Below are positions 1,819 through 31,596 of a DNA stretch of 64,000 bases, one piece after another. Every line of letters begins with the position of its first letter. The stretch's first letter is position 1. The DNA is from Macrostomum lignano (Eukaryota), in assembly GCA_002269645.1 (NCBI GenBank), contig NIVC01000424.1:248001-312000 (forward strand), written 5' to 3'. Below the pieces are notes generated by a model. The model was not told the origin of the DNA, did not search any database, and saw nothing but the letters and a program-made list of their open reading frames with translations. Made by a program: the position numbers and the translations under genes.

Positions 1819-4800
1819 CGTTCTCTTCGCTGTCGCTCATCGTCTCAGTCAGTCCGTCGTCCAAAATAAGAACTTTACTGGCGGAGGCTACTGTCGACTC
1901 GAATCTCTGAGCCGTTCCAGCTGACGTTGGCGCGCTACAGTCGAGCACAGCCAACTGGTAGCCTAGCGATGCCGCTTGACAGCGCAGCCGATCCCACCCA
2001 GCCTGTCGCTTCCTGGTTGGAAGCGGCCAATAATTTCCCTGCTGGGATCGAAGCTTCTGAAGCTGCTTCAGGCAGCGCGGAGAGACTACTACAATCAGTA
2101 GTATTCGACGATTTGTGTAGCGTTTTTGTTCTGCGGGTTTTTATAGTTATAGATTTGCTTCAACGCTACTATTAGTAGTTTTTGTTTAGGGAAATATATC
2201 AGTAGATAGGCTATTTAAGTCGTTAACTTCAGAATCTCGTTCTTTCTTCTAAATATACTAAATCTCTAAGGTTTGTTTGTTTGTATGCTTGTCCATAACG
2301 CTCTAGAGATTGCCTAGAGCACAGAGCACAGATTGAGGTCACAGAATCCCTGTGACCACTTGACTGATCCAATTCCTTCGATTTCAATGTTCTAATGGGT
2401 TCTATCCTCTTTTTTATCATCCAATATAATCCTTGCTGCAAAACTCGGAAAATGAATACTTTTGACTCCAATAAAATCGAAAAAATTAAACAAATAATTA
2501 GCGTAAAACCCCGACAGGAGCTGAAGCGCTCATCAAATGAAATAAAAAAGAATCTAGGAGTTAACAATATTTTCTGGAACTCAATTATTCTAATAAAATT
2601 AGCAAGTATATATAGCCTATGACCGCTCACCACCCACTTCAAAACTAACGTGTCCATCACAAGGATGTCAGCATACACAGGTGAAGCAGAAGGATGTTAA
2701 ACTCGCAAATTGTACAGTAAGTACAGTATATACTCACGCAAATTCGTGTACAGCACGTAGATGAGACATCCAACGGCAACGATCGCCACACCTACAGGCA
2801 GCAAGAGTGCTAGAAGCAGCAGAGCTGTCGACGAGTCTCTTTGAATCTCTCCTCCTTCACCTGCTGCCGCTTTGTCGCAATCGACCCCCTGATCGGCTAG
2901 ATGAACGCCTGCGGCACCGCGACGAGTGTTCGGCATCCATTCTTGCTGCTCATCAATGCGATTCCATAGTTTAGACAGATCTGAATTATATAAAAATGAG
3001 GCTGTTTAGGAGTAACAACTGTTCCACTCCTTACCCTGCGTAGGCTGACTGCACTTGTTTGCAGTTTTACACCAATGGTCAGCAAACTCCGACCTGCTCA
3101 AGGTTTGTGCCTCTTCTCAGCTCTCTTCTCTCCCTTCTCCCTTCTCTCCCTTCTTCTTCTACTCTCTTCTCTTGTCTTCTTTTCCTCTCGTCTCTCCTCT
3201 CTCCTCAGAAGCGTCAGCAGCGCAATATTATCAGATAAGTGTCGTTTGGCATCTTGGATCCAAAAAAGTTTAAGATGATAGAAAATACCATATGCGGCAT
3301 CTGTATATTTACTAGAGCCTCTCTGACCCGCAAAAAGTTGCAGAAATCTGCAGACTCTATTTAATCAGATTTCTCAAAGTTGACAATTGATAGAAGTCTT
3401 AAAATCCCATTATTAGATTTAGAATCATAATACAGTATGTATGAAATTAAAAATTAATTGCAGAAAATCTGGAACTTACATTAAATGGCATTCAAACACT
3501 TTATGGTTTATGACCTCTTTTATTATCGCTCTAAATACGGTGCAACACAAATGCTCTTATCGATTTAAATAGCAGACTAAATTAAGAGCTTACGTTTGAT
3601 ATCAGTAATGTCATGTTTTATTTCAATATCATCCGTGCTTGCGAAATACGAAATACTTACTTATTATAAAGATGATTGACGAATGGCTTGACCGTATCGC
3701 TTCTTGAATGGAGCTTGAACTAGATTTGAGTCTGTACTGAAAAGGTCAAAATTAATGATTTCATTAATACGAAGTAAAGGAATATTATTACTTCGAAAAA
3801 ACATTCTTTCTTAGATTAACTTCTGATTTGTAGATGTATATATATAGACAGCACACAGATTAGATAGATGATTGATAGATAGATTGATAGATAGATAGAT
3901 AGATAGATAGATACGAGTAGATAGATAGATAGATAGATAGATAGATAGATAGATAGATAGATAGATAGATAGATAGATAGATAGATAGATAGATAGATAG
4001 ATAGATAGATAGATAGATAGATAGATAGATAGATAGATAGATAGATAGATAGATAGATAGATAGATAGATAGATAGATAGATAGATAGATAGATAGATAG
4101 ATAGATAGATAGATAGATAGATAGATAGATAGATAGATAGATAGATAGATAGATAGATAGATAGATAGATAGATAGATAGATAGATAGATAGATAGATAG
4201 ATAGATAGATAGATAGATAGATAGATAGATAGATAGATAGATAGATAGATAGATAGATAGATAGATAGATAGATAGATAGATAGATAGATAGATAGATAG
4301 ATAGATAGATAGATAGATAGATAGATAGATAGATAGATAGATAGATAGATAGATAGATAGATAGATAGATAGATAGATAGATAGATAGATAGATAGATAG
4401 ATAGATAGATAGATAGATAGATAGATAGATAGATAGATAGATAGATAGATAGATAGATAGATAGATAGATAGATAGATAGATAGATAGATAGATAGATAG
4501 ATAGATAGATAGATAGATAGATAGATAGATAGATAGATAGATAGATAGATAGATAGATAGATAGATAGATAGATAGATAGATAGATAGATAGATAGATAG
4601 ATAGATAGATAGATAGATAGATAGATAGATAGATAGATAGATAGATAGATAGATAGATAGATAGATAGATAGATAGATAGATAGATAGATAGATAGATAG
4701 ATAGATAGATAGATAGATAGATAGATAGATAGATAGATAGATAGATAGATAGATAGATAGATAGATAGATAGATAGATAGATAGATAGATAGATAGATAG

Positions 4801-29400: not shown

Positions 29401-31596
29401 CCCACAGTGTCAGAAACTGGCAGACAGATGAGACAATGACAGATTCGATGACAGACAATATGACAGACAATATGACAGACACACGACAGAAACTACAACA
29501 GACACTATGACAGACACTATGACAGACAATATGACAGACAATATGACAGACACACGACAGAAACTACAACAGACACTATGACAGACACTATGACAGACAA
29601 TATAACAGACACTATGACAGACACTATGACAGACACTATGACAGACACTATGACAGACACTATGACAGACACTATGACAGACACTATGACAGACAATATA
29701 ACAGACACTATGACAGACACTATGACAGACACTATGACAGACACTATAACAGACACTATAACAGACACTATGACAGACACACGACAGAAACTACAACAGA
29801 CACTATGACAGACACTATGACAGACAATATGACAGACAATATGACAGACACACGACAGAAACTACAACAGACACTATGACAGACACTATGACAGACAATA
29901 TAACAGACACTATGACAGACACTATGACAGACACTATGACAGACACTATGACAGACACTATGACAGACACTATGACAGACACTAGGACAGACAATATGAC
30001 AGACACTAGGACAGACACTATGACAGACACTATGACAGACACTATGACAGACACTAGGACAGACAATATGACGGACACTATGACAGACACTATGACTGAC
30101 ACTACGACAGACGCAATGACGGATTCGATGACAGAAAATATGACAGACACTATGACAGCTTACTTGTTGCTTCTTGGCAACATATTTTCTGAAAAAGGCC
30201 CTGACTTTGCTACCCGGTTCTGCAGGCGCTGTGGCCAAGCACACCAGCCTGTCCACCAGTCTGTCACTGAGCTGTCGGGTGTCCTCAGCAGTTGCTGGGC
30301 CAATGTCCACCGGGCCCTCCAGAATGTAGCCGTAGATTGTCGGGCTCATCGGTTTGCGAGTTCTGAACTCGCCTAAAAGTGCAAGTCGGTTTATCATGCT
30401 CTTATTTTATCATCACTGCACGCTTGAGATCTAGAGTGAATTAAATTGAAAACCTTACTTGGAAGGTAAAGTCCATAATAAACCACCTCGGTTTCATTTG
30501 TTAGAACAATTTTCACGTTGAACGGTTTGTATGGATCGATAGGTATGCTGATATTGATGAGCAGAGTCGATGATGAGCAGGCTAAGCAGCGCGTGTGCTC
30601 AAGCAGCTTGTTGTTGGCGTCATCGGTGACGCTGAGATTGAAACTGCTTGTGTTAGCACTTGCTTCTATCCAGGGCAGGCGAATACTGATAAGCATTGCC
30701 ACAGCGTTCTTCTCCTTGAAGCAGACGCTGTAAAGTAGTTCCTCTTCGATCTTAAAATTGATTAGAACTTCCCATATTGTTTGGACAGTTTCCTGCAACA
30801 AATTGGAAGCTACAGACATGGAAGGATTAAGATACCACTGATATAATTATTTGACTTATAGCTGGTGTATAGAAATTTATCGAAATCAAGAGTCTCATAA
30901 AATTTTGATCTGACATGTGTCAAGACATTGTCTGCGACATCTCAGTTAACACAGCAGTGCATACAGCACCAGGCCATTGTTTGTGACATCTCAGTTAACA
31001 CAGCAGTGCATGCAGCATCAGGACATTGTCTGCGACATCTCAGTTAACACAGCAGTGCATACAGCATCAGGCCATTGTCTGCGACATCTCAGTTAACACA
31101 GCAATGCATGCAGCATCAGGACATTGTCTGCGACATCTCAGTTAACACAGCAGTGCATGCAGCATCAGGCCATTGTCTGCGACATCTCAGTTAACACAGC
31201 AGTGCATGCAGCATCAGGACATTGTTTGTGACATCTCAGTTAACACAGCAGTGCATACAGCACCAGGCCATTGTCTTGACATCTCAGTTAACACAGCAGT
31301 GCATGCAGCATCAGGCCATTGTTTGTGACATCTCAGTTAACACAGCAGTGCATACAGCATCAGGCCATTGTTTGTGACATCTCAGTTAACACAGCAGTGC
31401 ATGCAGCATCAGGACATTGTCTGCGACATCTCAGTTAACACAGCAGTGCATACAGCACCAGGCCATTGTCTGTGATTGCAGTTGTCTCAAACCAGACTCA
31501 CCATATGTTTCGGGCCAAGGCAGACAATTTCGCCTGGCTGGCCATAATTGTTGCCGCCATCAACAGAAGACAACTCGCCAAGAGTTGGAGCTGATT
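26424..31596 (-). CDS. Multi-exon single-pass membrane receptor-like gene, paralog 2, with one apparent 1-nt frameshift; 5' end unresolved
   Basis: GT-AG exons 31596-31502, 30837-30459, 30372-30164, 29416-29166 (needs +1 nt), 29091-29043, 27330-27109 (TM: [28 protein letters not shown]) and 26848-26424 (basic juxtamembrane [27 protein letters not shown]). All other junction phases are consistent. Confidence 0.75.
27410..29006. repeat. 23-bp minisatellite, about 1.6 kb, intronic
   Basis: Unit TGACGTCTT(C/T)CCGACAC(C/T)(A/C)AAA(T/C). Confidence 0.97.
29436..30160. repeat. 12-bp minisatellite with higher-order blocks, intronic
   Basis: Unit ATGACAGACACT with a recurring ACACGACAGAAACTACAACAG spacer. 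Confidence 0.96.
30925..31475. repeat. 49-bp minisatellite, about 11 copies, intronic (unrelated to the 1-1603 array)
   Basis: Unit GG(C/A)CATTGT(C/T)TG(C/T)GACATCTCAGTTAACACAGCAGTGCAT(G/A)CAGCA(T/C)CA; starts at 30972 and 31021. Confidence 0.95.

Follow-up and report, generated by a model that had tools for sequence, protein, structure and literature searches.

A diverged tandem gene pair of Macrostomum lignano probably encoding taxon-restricted type I membrane glycoproteins

In the flatworm Macrostomum lignano, two minus-strand genes that are split into short exons between tandem arrays raise the question of what kind of protein they encode. They lie in the window analyzed here, i.e., a stretch of 64,000 nucleotides of contig NIVC01000424.1 (positions 248,001 to 312,000, assembly GCA_002269645.1), where paralog 1 (P1) and paralog 2 (P2) are arranged in tandem, head-to-tail, downstream of MATE transporter genes. 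A first-pass annotation had described them as unannotated paralogous receptors with a possible TIR/SEFIR-like cytoplasmic domain, and all 15 motifs that it had quoted were found in place. We consider it likely that P1 and P2, a diverged tandem pair, encode single-pass type I membrane glycoproteins of M. lignano that form a taxon-restricted family.

Gene models, introns and annotation status

Two further contigs of the same assembly carry homeologous loci (L001 and L002) with 96-99% identity to the window, and the gene order MATE-P2-P1-Med28 is also present at both. P2 was assembled as a protein of 471 aa from six exons, with canonical GT-AG introns and an unbroken frame:

31502..31666, minus strand: P2 exon 1, start codon (ATG) plus signal peptide; phase 0 end, donor GTGAGT; exon and splice sites also conserved in L001 and L002
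30459..30792, minus strand: P2 exon 2, predicted helix and seven-strand beta-sandwich part of the ectodomain; ends in phase 1
30164..30372, minus strand: P2 exon 3, IYGYIL...; phase 1 to phase 0
29166..29276, minus strand: P2 exon 4, phase 0 to phase 0; junctions identical in UniProt fragment P0001
27109..27280, minus strand: P2 exon 5, ECDCD motif and transmembrane (TM) helix; ends in phase 1; acceptor 27280 used by P0001
26424..26848, minus strand: P2 exon 6, cytoplasmic tail to the stop codon

The junction between exon 4 and the TM exon is ambiguous, since acceptor 27330 combined with a possible micro-exon (29091-29043) is an alternative for exon 5. Exon 6 has an alternative acceptor at 26791, which alone preserves the frame in the copies of L001 and L002.

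P1 was likewise assembled through canonical GT-AG introns in an uninterrupted frame:

24079..24207, minus strand: P1 exon 1, start codon (ATG) plus signal peptide (MSLSIAIRRAEFTLILSLLCVLLTAVRPAWTQ...CRGPNNL); phase 0, donor GTGAGC; outside the earlier gene model
5737..6091, minus strand: P1 exon 2, DELRFALC, NCSSCDLLI and ETSVKVYGLY; ends in phase 1
5172..5422, minus strand: P1 exon 3, TLGYVL...; phase 1 to phase 0
5001..5099, minus strand: P1 exon 4, SSCGEAWCIYD...; phase 0 to phase 0
3661..3736, minus strand: P1 extra exon, YRLKSSSSSIQEAIRSSHSSIIFII; phase 0 to phase 1, flanked by acceptor TTTTCAG and donor GTAAGT; part of the transcript-based GenBank models
2738..2980, minus strand: P1 TM exon, NLSKLWNRIDEQQ...VDCDK...TM helix; ends in phase 1; start at 2980 in transcript-based models
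1819..2130, minus strand: P1 exon 6, beginning of the cytoplasmic tail with RILLIVVVSPRC, YQLAVLD and ASKVLIL; ends at donor GTGAGT

The last exon of P1 (VNQQVRLLQRLVMLEKHR...DSFV) is located off the window, beyond its left edge. An internal acceptor of the TM exon at 2888 yields a shorter in-frame form in which the extra exon is skipped. The gene model given for P1 by the first-pass annotation required correction: exon 1 and the last exon outside the window had been missed, and the transcript-based models add the extra exon and a TM exon start at 2980. First and last exons can be missed by exon-level reading because satellite-filled introns split the genes in this genome; intron 1 of P1, which separates exon 1 from exon 2, spans 18 kb.

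Unrelated tandem arrays fill the introns of P1 and P2. Intron 1 of P1 contains two large elements:

7536..17617, no strand: 10-kb satellite with a 23-bp unit in about 443 copies
19781..23494, minus strand: P-element/THAP9-like DNA transposon with perfect 44-bp terminal inverted repeats

The transposon is flanked by an 8-bp target-site duplication (ATGTTGCC), and its THAP transposase ORF (21020-22987) encodes the Pfam domains THAP, TNP-like RNaseH_N and GTP-binding insertion. THAP transposase, inverted repeats and 8-bp duplication assign it to the P-element superfamily, and it is intact and apparently active. A 17.3-kb stretch (6457-23781) that includes the satellite is absent from both homeologous loci; P1 intron 1 of this haplotype has gained the satellite and the intact P-element-like transposon.

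P1 is not unannotated, as had been stated, since it is present in GenBank as BOX15_Mlig023436g1 / BOX15_Mlig002524g1 (hypothetical protein), matched by our model residue for residue across most exons, and in UniProt. P1 is exactly one of those taxon-restricted (orphan) genes of M. lignano that are annotated as hypothetical proteins. P2 is annotated only in part: no gene call is present at the two GenBank loci, and UniProt has a fragment (A0A1I8HUF6) and a chimera with MATE. The GenBank annotation of M. lignano is derived from a genome-guided (RNA-seq-guided) transcriptome, and its pipeline discarded transcripts overlapping repeat annotations, which could be why P2 is missing there (PMC5730564).

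The proposal of a lineage-specific family was borne out by the searches. Exhaustive phmmer with P2 against 1.84e9 representative proteins returned a fragment of P2 itself as the sole match, and word-indexed searches, for which P1 and a P1+P2 profile were the queries, matched only M. lignano models of P1 and P2; thus, no homologues outside M. lignano were found by either approach. New here is that the annotated P1 has a diverged tandem paralog, P2, which is without a proper gene model, and that both have a type I membrane architecture in common.

Paralogy, membrane topology and genomic copies

The exon/phase skeleton had been claimed to be the same in both genes, and four intron positions and phases indeed matched between P1 and P2. 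First, a phase 0 intron is located four residues past C-x-G-P. Second, a phase 1 intron is located two residues past YGLY. Third, a phase 0 intron immediately precedes [AS]SCxxxWC. Fourth, a phase 1 intron immediately follows the TM helix. With 22-26% identity between P1 and P2, the similarity of the ectodomains was above chance (Smith-Waterman z=5.4 vs shuffles; hhalign P=0.0043 over 37 columns with 46% identity). The similarity of the tails, in contrast, was at chance (Smith-Waterman z=0.3; hhalign P=0.38): for the full P1 tail vs the P2 tail, z was -0.29 and 601 of 1000 shuffles scored equal or higher, and MAFFT and Smith-Waterman aligned different tail segments. Paralogy thus rests on the 37-column ectodomain stretch, the intron phases and the tandem position, and P1 and P2 are old, strongly diverged tandem paralogs. 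The tail motifs from which the TIR/SEFIR-like domain had been proposed are literally present; however, given that no similarity between the tails was detected, the matches taken as shared beta-A/beta-B/beta-C motifs do not exceed chance level.

Both spliced models begin with a signal peptide that looks cleavable and an N-glycosylated ectodomain with Cys residues (about 275-320 aa), followed by a single TM helix and a tail in the cytoplasm (141 aa in P2, 173 aa in P1). N-x-S/T sequons are confined to the ectodomains (4 in P2 and 7 in P1, 0 in the tails), which contain 9-10 Cys, five of them in invariant columns of the P1/P2 alignment. The net charge of the 15 residues after the TM helix is +6 for P2 and +4 for P1, as compared to -1 and -2 before the helix. 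Signal peptide, ectodomain-only sequons, a single TM helix and positive-inside charge are those of a type I single-pass protein, in agreement with the earlier topology.

The AF2 models had a mean pLDDT of 37.6 (P2) and 31.2 (P1), which is too low to establish any fold. At this low confidence, both paralogs were predicted to have seven strands in corresponding regions, forming one seven-strand sandwich that is followed by a mixed alpha/beta region (P2 residues 179-249). Foldseek gave only weak generic Ig-like matches for the beta-sandwich region. Judging from these models, the membrane-distal ectodomain is probably a seven-strand beta-sandwich. The membrane-proximal part would have the conserved motifs SCxxxWC and DCD at its center.

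In addition to the window, L001 and L002 provide two further copies for comparison. All splice sites of P2 are conserved in both. As evidence of constraint, exons diverged between copies by 0.74-0.89% and unique non-exon DNA by 1.2-1.9%. With only 1-9 substitutions per class, pN/pS was about 0.3-0.4 in five of the six copy comparisons and, on equally small counts, 1.09 for P2 between L001 and L002. The L001 copy of P2 carries a 1-nt deletion in exon 3, and L001 and L002 share the loss of 1 nt where exon 6 begins. Due to the latter, both must use a different exon 6 acceptor; the L002 copy is intact given the 26791-type acceptor. In view of these deletions, some P2 copies may be decaying; alternatively, errors of long-read assembly could have produced these single-base indels.

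It is therefore conceivable, albeit improbable, that one or both genes, mainly P2, are not functional protein-coding genes but duplicates in decay, or spurious frames within repeat-rich DNA that is transcribed, in which case the receptor-like features would be without function. The frameshift in exon 3 of L001, the indel shared in exon 6, the pN/pS of 1.09, the absence of P2 from the transcript-based annotation at both loci, the lack of a homologue outside M. lignano and the lack of a confident AF2 fold would fit this explanation. However, six exons remained in frame with fully conserved canonical splice sites in three genomic copies, one of which (L002) is intact, and exons diverged about half as fast as the adjacent unique DNA. 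Signal peptide, sequons, conserved Cys, TM helix and positive-inside charge are, moreover, coherent; removal of repeat-overlapping transcripts (PMC5730564) could explain the missing P2, and assembly errors the indels.

Domain tests of tails and ectodomains

TIR domains are recognized by box 1 ((F/Y)DAF(I/V)SY-like), box 2 (RDxxPG, BB loop) and box 3 (FW). TIR/SEFIR domains comprise five beta-alpha units in about 135-160 aa, the TIR criterion being a five-stranded parallel flavodoxin-like sheet with five helices in about 125-200 aa. Pfam TIR, TIR_2, SEFIR and FN3 gave no match at E<=10 with either the tails or the whole proteins of P1 and P2, and HMMER filters conceal only matches weaker than about E=0.1-0.25. 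The Pfam IL-17R ectodomain did not match P1 or P2, nor did a PDB sequence search return a match. Foldseek against PDB had no match at E<=0.001, and the 50 matches listed included neither a TIR nor a SEFIR chain. Upon direct reading, RDxxPG, FW box and box-1-like motif were found in neither tail. In the low-confidence AF2 models, about 105 aa of the P2 tail were ordered in four beta-alpha units and the P1 tail was all helix, so that a beta-alpha pattern was predicted for P2 only. The TIR/SEFIR tail proposed by the first-pass annotation was unsupported by any of these sequence- and model-based tests.

The negative Pfam result is not decisive, since double-FN3 and SEFIR have been reported to be difficult to identify in many IL-17Rs of invertebrates, even when domain models are used (PMC11087794). 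It appears very unlikely, however, that P1 and P2 are extremely diverged STIR-superfamily receptors of IL-17R-like layout, in which two beta-sandwich modules and a TM helix would be followed by a degenerate SEFIR/TIR tail recruiting a SEFIR/TIR adaptor. The type I layout with its ectodomain length fits a double-FN3 receptor, and the low-confidence model of the P2 tail alternates between strands and helices (E361-365, H370-390, E395-399, H404-412, E418-423, H428-435, E442-447, H452-467). However, this ordered region has four units as opposed to five in TIR/SEFIR, the P1 tail was modelled as helical, the two tails are not detectably alike, neither has RDxxPG or an FW box, and the Pfam, PDB and Foldseek searches were negative, with no significant match among the 50 listed for Foldseek.

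Like the IL-17 receptor family (double FN3, TM helix, SEFIR), P1 and P2 have type I topology, an approximately two-module ectodomain and a tail of 140-170 aa, and fast ectodomain divergence has been reported for invertebrate IL-17Rs, too (PMC11087794). They differ in that FN3/SEFIR signals are lacking, the P2 tail is too short for SEFIR, the tails are mutually unrelated in sequence, and AF2 and Foldseek provide no structural support. With the TLR/IL-1R family (TIR tail), they share the type I receptor layout with a cytoplasmic domain and, at low AF2 confidence, hydrophobic strands that possibly alternate with helices in the tail of P2; they lack an LRR or Ig ectodomain signature, a TIR match and box 1-3 motifs, and the P1 tail is helical. 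The chance is very slim that the pair is the visible part of a Macrostomum-specific receptor family whose ectodomain (beta-sandwich plus SCxxxWC module) and compact alpha/beta cytoplasmic domain are new folds or STIR-type (SEFIR/TIR) domains beyond sequence detection, which would make P1 and P2 cryptic IL-17R/TLR-like immune receptors of a flatworm. An immune or cytokine role of P1 and P2 is pure speculation, and with the TIR/SEFIR link lacking support, the pair does not at present give access to innate-immune signalling in flatworms.

A canonical WSC domain contains 8 Cys, and the order of Y-G-x strand, helix, aromatic strand and xCxxxWC loosely recalls this family. That the membrane-proximal ectodomain (IYGYIL ... 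SCEAVWC) is a degenerate WSC-type carbohydrate-binding domain, making P1 and P2 lectin-like surface receptors, is very improbable: the UniRef name of fragment A0A1I8HUF6 ('WSC domain-containing protein') and the mixed alpha/beta model of residues 179-249 (low confidence) speak for it, whereas Pfam WSC did not match P0001, P2 or P1 at E<=10, only 3-5 Cys were read in the candidate region, and automatic UniProt names are unreliable because 'Protein kinase domain-containing', given to the P1 models, lacks Pfam support. P2 resembles WSC surface proteins (KREMEN, polycystin-1, fungal Wsc sensors) in having an extracellular Cys-containing module adjoining the membrane and differs from them by the absent eight-Cys pattern.

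The sole Pfam signal was Sec63 Brl, from the beta-sandwich end of the Brr2/Sec63 module, in the exon 2 region of P2 (profile positions 129-235 of 252, the helix-plus-beta-sandwich end). It scored 23.1 bits on the raw P2 ORF, where residues derived from an intron are part of the sequence; on spliced P2 the score was 14.5 bits (E=0.021), and P1 had no match. Membership was rejected because the scores stayed below the gathering threshold of 25 bits. Domains of the Sec63 Brl type occur in the cytosol or nucleus, whereas the matching region of P2 is extracellular; the match is at most a generic fold resemblance.

Proposed role of the pair

For the preferred reading of P1 and P2 as taxon-restricted type I glycoproteins, function is entirely inferred and would most likely be that of a surface receptor or of adhesion/recognition. 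The ectodomains may bind a partner at the cell surface, and any signal would pass through a tail that differs between the paralogs and for which no test indicated the TIR/SEFIR type. A proper gene model is needed for P2, as the public ones are a fragment and a MATE chimera. If functional, the pair would illustrate how a flatworm used as a regeneration model has a surface receptor family that is taxon-restricted and diverges fast.

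Gene models of P1 and P2

All 15 peptide motifs quoted in the first-pass annotation were located on the minus strand where expected. All three frames of this strand were read in the neighborhood of each motif, and exons were joined at canonical splice sites. As had been proposed, the exons of both paralog 1 (P1) and paralog 2 (P2) could be assembled via GT-AG introns into open frames, and P2 yielded an uninterrupted frame of 471 aa from six GT-AG exons. Four intron positions, including their phases, were common to P1 and P2.

Exons and common introns of P1 and P2
31666-31502, 30792-30459, 30372-30164, 29276-29166, 27280-27109 and 26848-26424, minus strand: P2 exons (GT-AG assembly)
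6091-5737, 5422-5172, 5099-5001, transmembrane (TM) exon ending at 2738, and 2130-1819, minus strand: P1 exons from the assembly (canonical sites)
Common intron, phase 0: four residues past C-x-G-P
Common intron, phase 1: two residues past YGLY
Common intron, phase 0: directly before [AS]SCxxxWC
Common intron, phase 1: directly after the TM helix

The annotated P1 proteins placed the first exon (MSLSIAIRRAEFTLILSLLCVLLTAVRPAWTQNRLSCRGPNNL) at window 24207-24079, so that intron 1 spans 18 kb in this haplotype; signal-peptide exons near 7383 (MYFTQFFLL...) or 6373 were rejected in its favor. These proteins also contained an additional exon (3736-3661) and a TM exon start at 2980, with strong splice signals at both. 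The P1 tail runs past the donor at 1819 into a last exon (VNQQVRLLQRLVMLEKHR...DSFV) outside the window, which at L002, one of two further homologous M. lignano loci (L001 and L002), lies ~6 kb downstream.

For P2, exon 4 is joined directly to 27280 in the UniProt fragment A0A1I8HUF6; alternatively, it may lead via a candidate micro-exon (29091-29043) to an acceptor at 27330, whose position corresponds to that of the P1 acceptor. Exon 6 starts at 26848 or 26791. A 1-nt deletion at this start, relative to the window, is common to L001 (~7436) and L002 (~6459), and thus the 26791-type acceptor alone stays in frame there. With this acceptor, the L002 copy encodes an intact product of 452 aa. The L001 copy carries a further 1-nt deletion in exon 3 (L001 5513-5720), where a C is lost from a CCC run. 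Either these deletions in exons 3 and 6 are genuine frameshifts, or they stem from errors in the assembly.

Coding evidence, annotation and relatives

Taken as real, these frameshifts would fit P1 and P2, mainly P2, being non-functional or decaying genes, a reading that we consider unlikely. All P2 splice sites were conserved in three genomic copies, and exons differed between copies by 0.74-0.89% as compared to 1.2-1.9% in neighboring unique non-exon DNA. Five of the six pairwise comparisons gave a pN/pS of 0.27-0.40 and one gave 1.09, with small counts throughout. The encoded proteins begin with a hydrophobic signal sequence in both P1 and P2. N-x-S/T sequons were present in the ectodomain (four in P2, seven in P1) and absent from the tails, and the ectodomain contains 9-10 cysteines, of which five fall in columns that are invariant in the alignment. 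The net charge was +6 (P2) and +4 (P1) after the TM helix, and -1 and -2 before it. Thus, several lines of evidence indicate that P1 and P2 are coding.

When 1.84 billion cluster representatives were searched exhaustively with P2 (phmmer), one match was returned, a 100% identical fragment of 194 aa from M. lignano (UniRef100_A0A1I8HUF6, auto-named 'WSC domain-containing protein'). Word-indexed homologue searches gave no match for P2 exon 2 and four proteins for P1, all from M. lignano.

Matches of P1 in the word-indexed search
BOX15_Mlig023436g1: 513 aa, GenBank
BOX15_Mlig002524g1: 552 aa, GenBank
Two UniProt models: 571 and 597 aa, auto-named 'Protein kinase domain-containing'

The long C-terminal extensions of the two UniProt models look out-of-frame or mis-joined. 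The profile search added solely a UniProt chimera (811 aa), in which a MATE (multidrug and toxin extrusion) transporter is fused to the N-terminal half of P2. Two tandem MATE genes (32446-34535 and 35666-37720, minus strand) lie directly upstream of P2, and the fusion could be a prediction artefact or a polycistronic trans-spliced unit of the kind described for M. lignano.

The two GenBank P1 genes are located on NIVC01000106.1 and NIVC01000423.1 (GCA_002269645.1), which are 96-99% identical to the window outside repeats. Both contigs share the order MATE - P2 - P1 - Med28, and P2 has no called gene on either. The GenBank annotation of M. lignano is based on an RNA-seq-guided transcriptome that had been cleared of transcripts overlapping annotated repeats, and simple and tandem repeats make up 15% of the genome (PMC5730564). 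No mention of the locus tags BOX15_Mlig023436g1 and BOX15_Mlig002524g1 was found in the literature. The earlier description of the pair as unannotated is wrong for P1, which is already public as a hypothetical protein; P2 is partly annotated, as the UniProt fragment and the MATE chimera, and lacks a correct model.

Tandem arrays, intron 1 expansion and neighboring genes

The window is eukaryotic DNA with many tandem arrays; in 1-32500, TRF detected 12 of them, each with a different unit. Nearly every P1 and P2 intron, as well as the P1-P2 spacer, harbors its own unrelated array; units were 4, 12, 16, 17, 21, 23, 30, 46, 49 and 80 bp, and the array at 1-1604 lies within the last intron of P1.

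Within P1 intron 1, an apparently intact P-element/THAP9-like DNA transposon was found at 19781-23494. Its 44-bp terminal inverted repeats are perfect, and the target-site duplication is 8 bp long (ATGTTGCC). The transposon ORF at 21020-22987 encodes 655 aa with THAP, TNP-like RNaseH_N and GTP-binding insertion domains, and a second ORF (20113-20898) weakly matches the RNaseH C-terminal part. The transposase ORF gave no record in an exact look-up. The transposon looks recently inserted and is possibly active. Together with a 10-kb satellite of 23-bp units (7536-17617) and an 80-bp array (18348-18715), it lies in a 17.3-kb stretch (6457-23781) without counterpart at the two homeologous or allelic GCA_002269645.1 loci, where less than 1 kb separates P1 exon 1 from exon 2. 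This expansion of the intron is specific to a haplotype or subgenome.

Unrelated neighboring genes were also observed, the first ORF carrying a strong CLAMP/flagellar C1a-32 domain (E=2.4e-37).

Unrelated neighbors
42324-42989 and 44171-45920, minus strand: CLAMP/C1a-32 ORF and PDZ-domain gene ORFs

Paralogy, ectodomain and tail

P1 and P2 share 22-26% overall identity. Their local alignment score of 62 corresponds to z=4.4 against shuffles, rising to z=5.4 for the ectodomain alone, and hhalign aligned the ectodomains over 37 columns with 46% identity (P=0.0043; P1 side, CSSCDLLIVTVESRIDSY...ETSVKVYGLYF). The tails gave z=0.3, or z=-0.29 with the complete P1 tail (601 of 1000 shuffles scored as well), and P=0.38 in hhalign. 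Thus, the proposed paralogy is borne out by above-chance similarity of the ectodomain, but not of the tail. The tail motif pairs put forward previously were not recovered, since both Smith-Waterman and MAFFT aligned P1 DRL-RCQAASLGYQL with another P2 segment. Judged by sequence, the tails appear homologous by position only. Paralogy is supported by one ectodomain block, short anchors at identical intron positions and phases, topology and tandem position. DNA-level similarity between the P1 and P2 loci was not found, and tblastn revealed no third paralog in the window.

The first-pass annotation had proposed an immune receptor with a TIR/SEFIR-like tail. No version of P1 or P2 matched TIR, TIR_2, SEFIR, FN3, WSC or kinase domains in Pfam at E<=10; every sequence-based test of the tail (Pfam, NCBIfam, PDB sequences) was negative and the immune-receptor claim is unsupported. 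The sole Pfam signal, Sec63 Brl (cut-off 25 bits), was rejected because its score fell from 23.1 bits on the raw P2 exon-2 ORF to 14.5 bits (E=0.021) on spliced P2, without intron-derived residues, because P1 gave no match and because the cellular compartment is wrong. Also rejected was TrkA on the P2 tail, the sole NCBIfam match (15.3 bits vs. a cut-off of 309); a single Foldseek match to TrkA-N (E=0.4), likewise rejected, covered a different part of TrkA. PDB sequences gave no match for either protein.

The AlphaFold2 input alignment had three rows, effectively two sequences, and the models were unusable (mean pLDDT of 37.6 for P2 and 31.2 for P1). At this low confidence, exon 2 formed a beta region of seven strands in both, and the tails were drawn as four beta-alpha units in P2 and as all helix in P1. 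Foldseek of the P2 model against the PDB found nothing at E<=0.001; the best matches were generic Ig-like chains at non-significant E-values of 0.05-0.4, and no TIR/SEFIR chain was among the 50 matches listed.

A small probability is kept for cryptic IL-17R-like receptors of the SEFIR/TIR superfamily, because PMC11087794 reports difficulty in detecting the SEFIR and double-FN3 domains of many invertebrate IL-17 receptors; no paper linking SEFIR or IL-17 with Platyhelminthes was found in the literature. A WSC-type lectin module in the ectodomain is also improbable, as Pfam reproduces neither the UniProt name 'WSC domain-containing' of the P2 fragment nor 'Protein kinase domain-containing' of the P1 models.

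P1 and P2 form a family without described relatives and of ordinary architecture. They are best read as a tandem duplicate pair of type I membrane glycoproteins restricted to this taxon. Such proteins would serve in reception or adhesion at the cell surface, with the ectodomain as the conserved and probably ligand-facing part and with tails that have diverged from each other.
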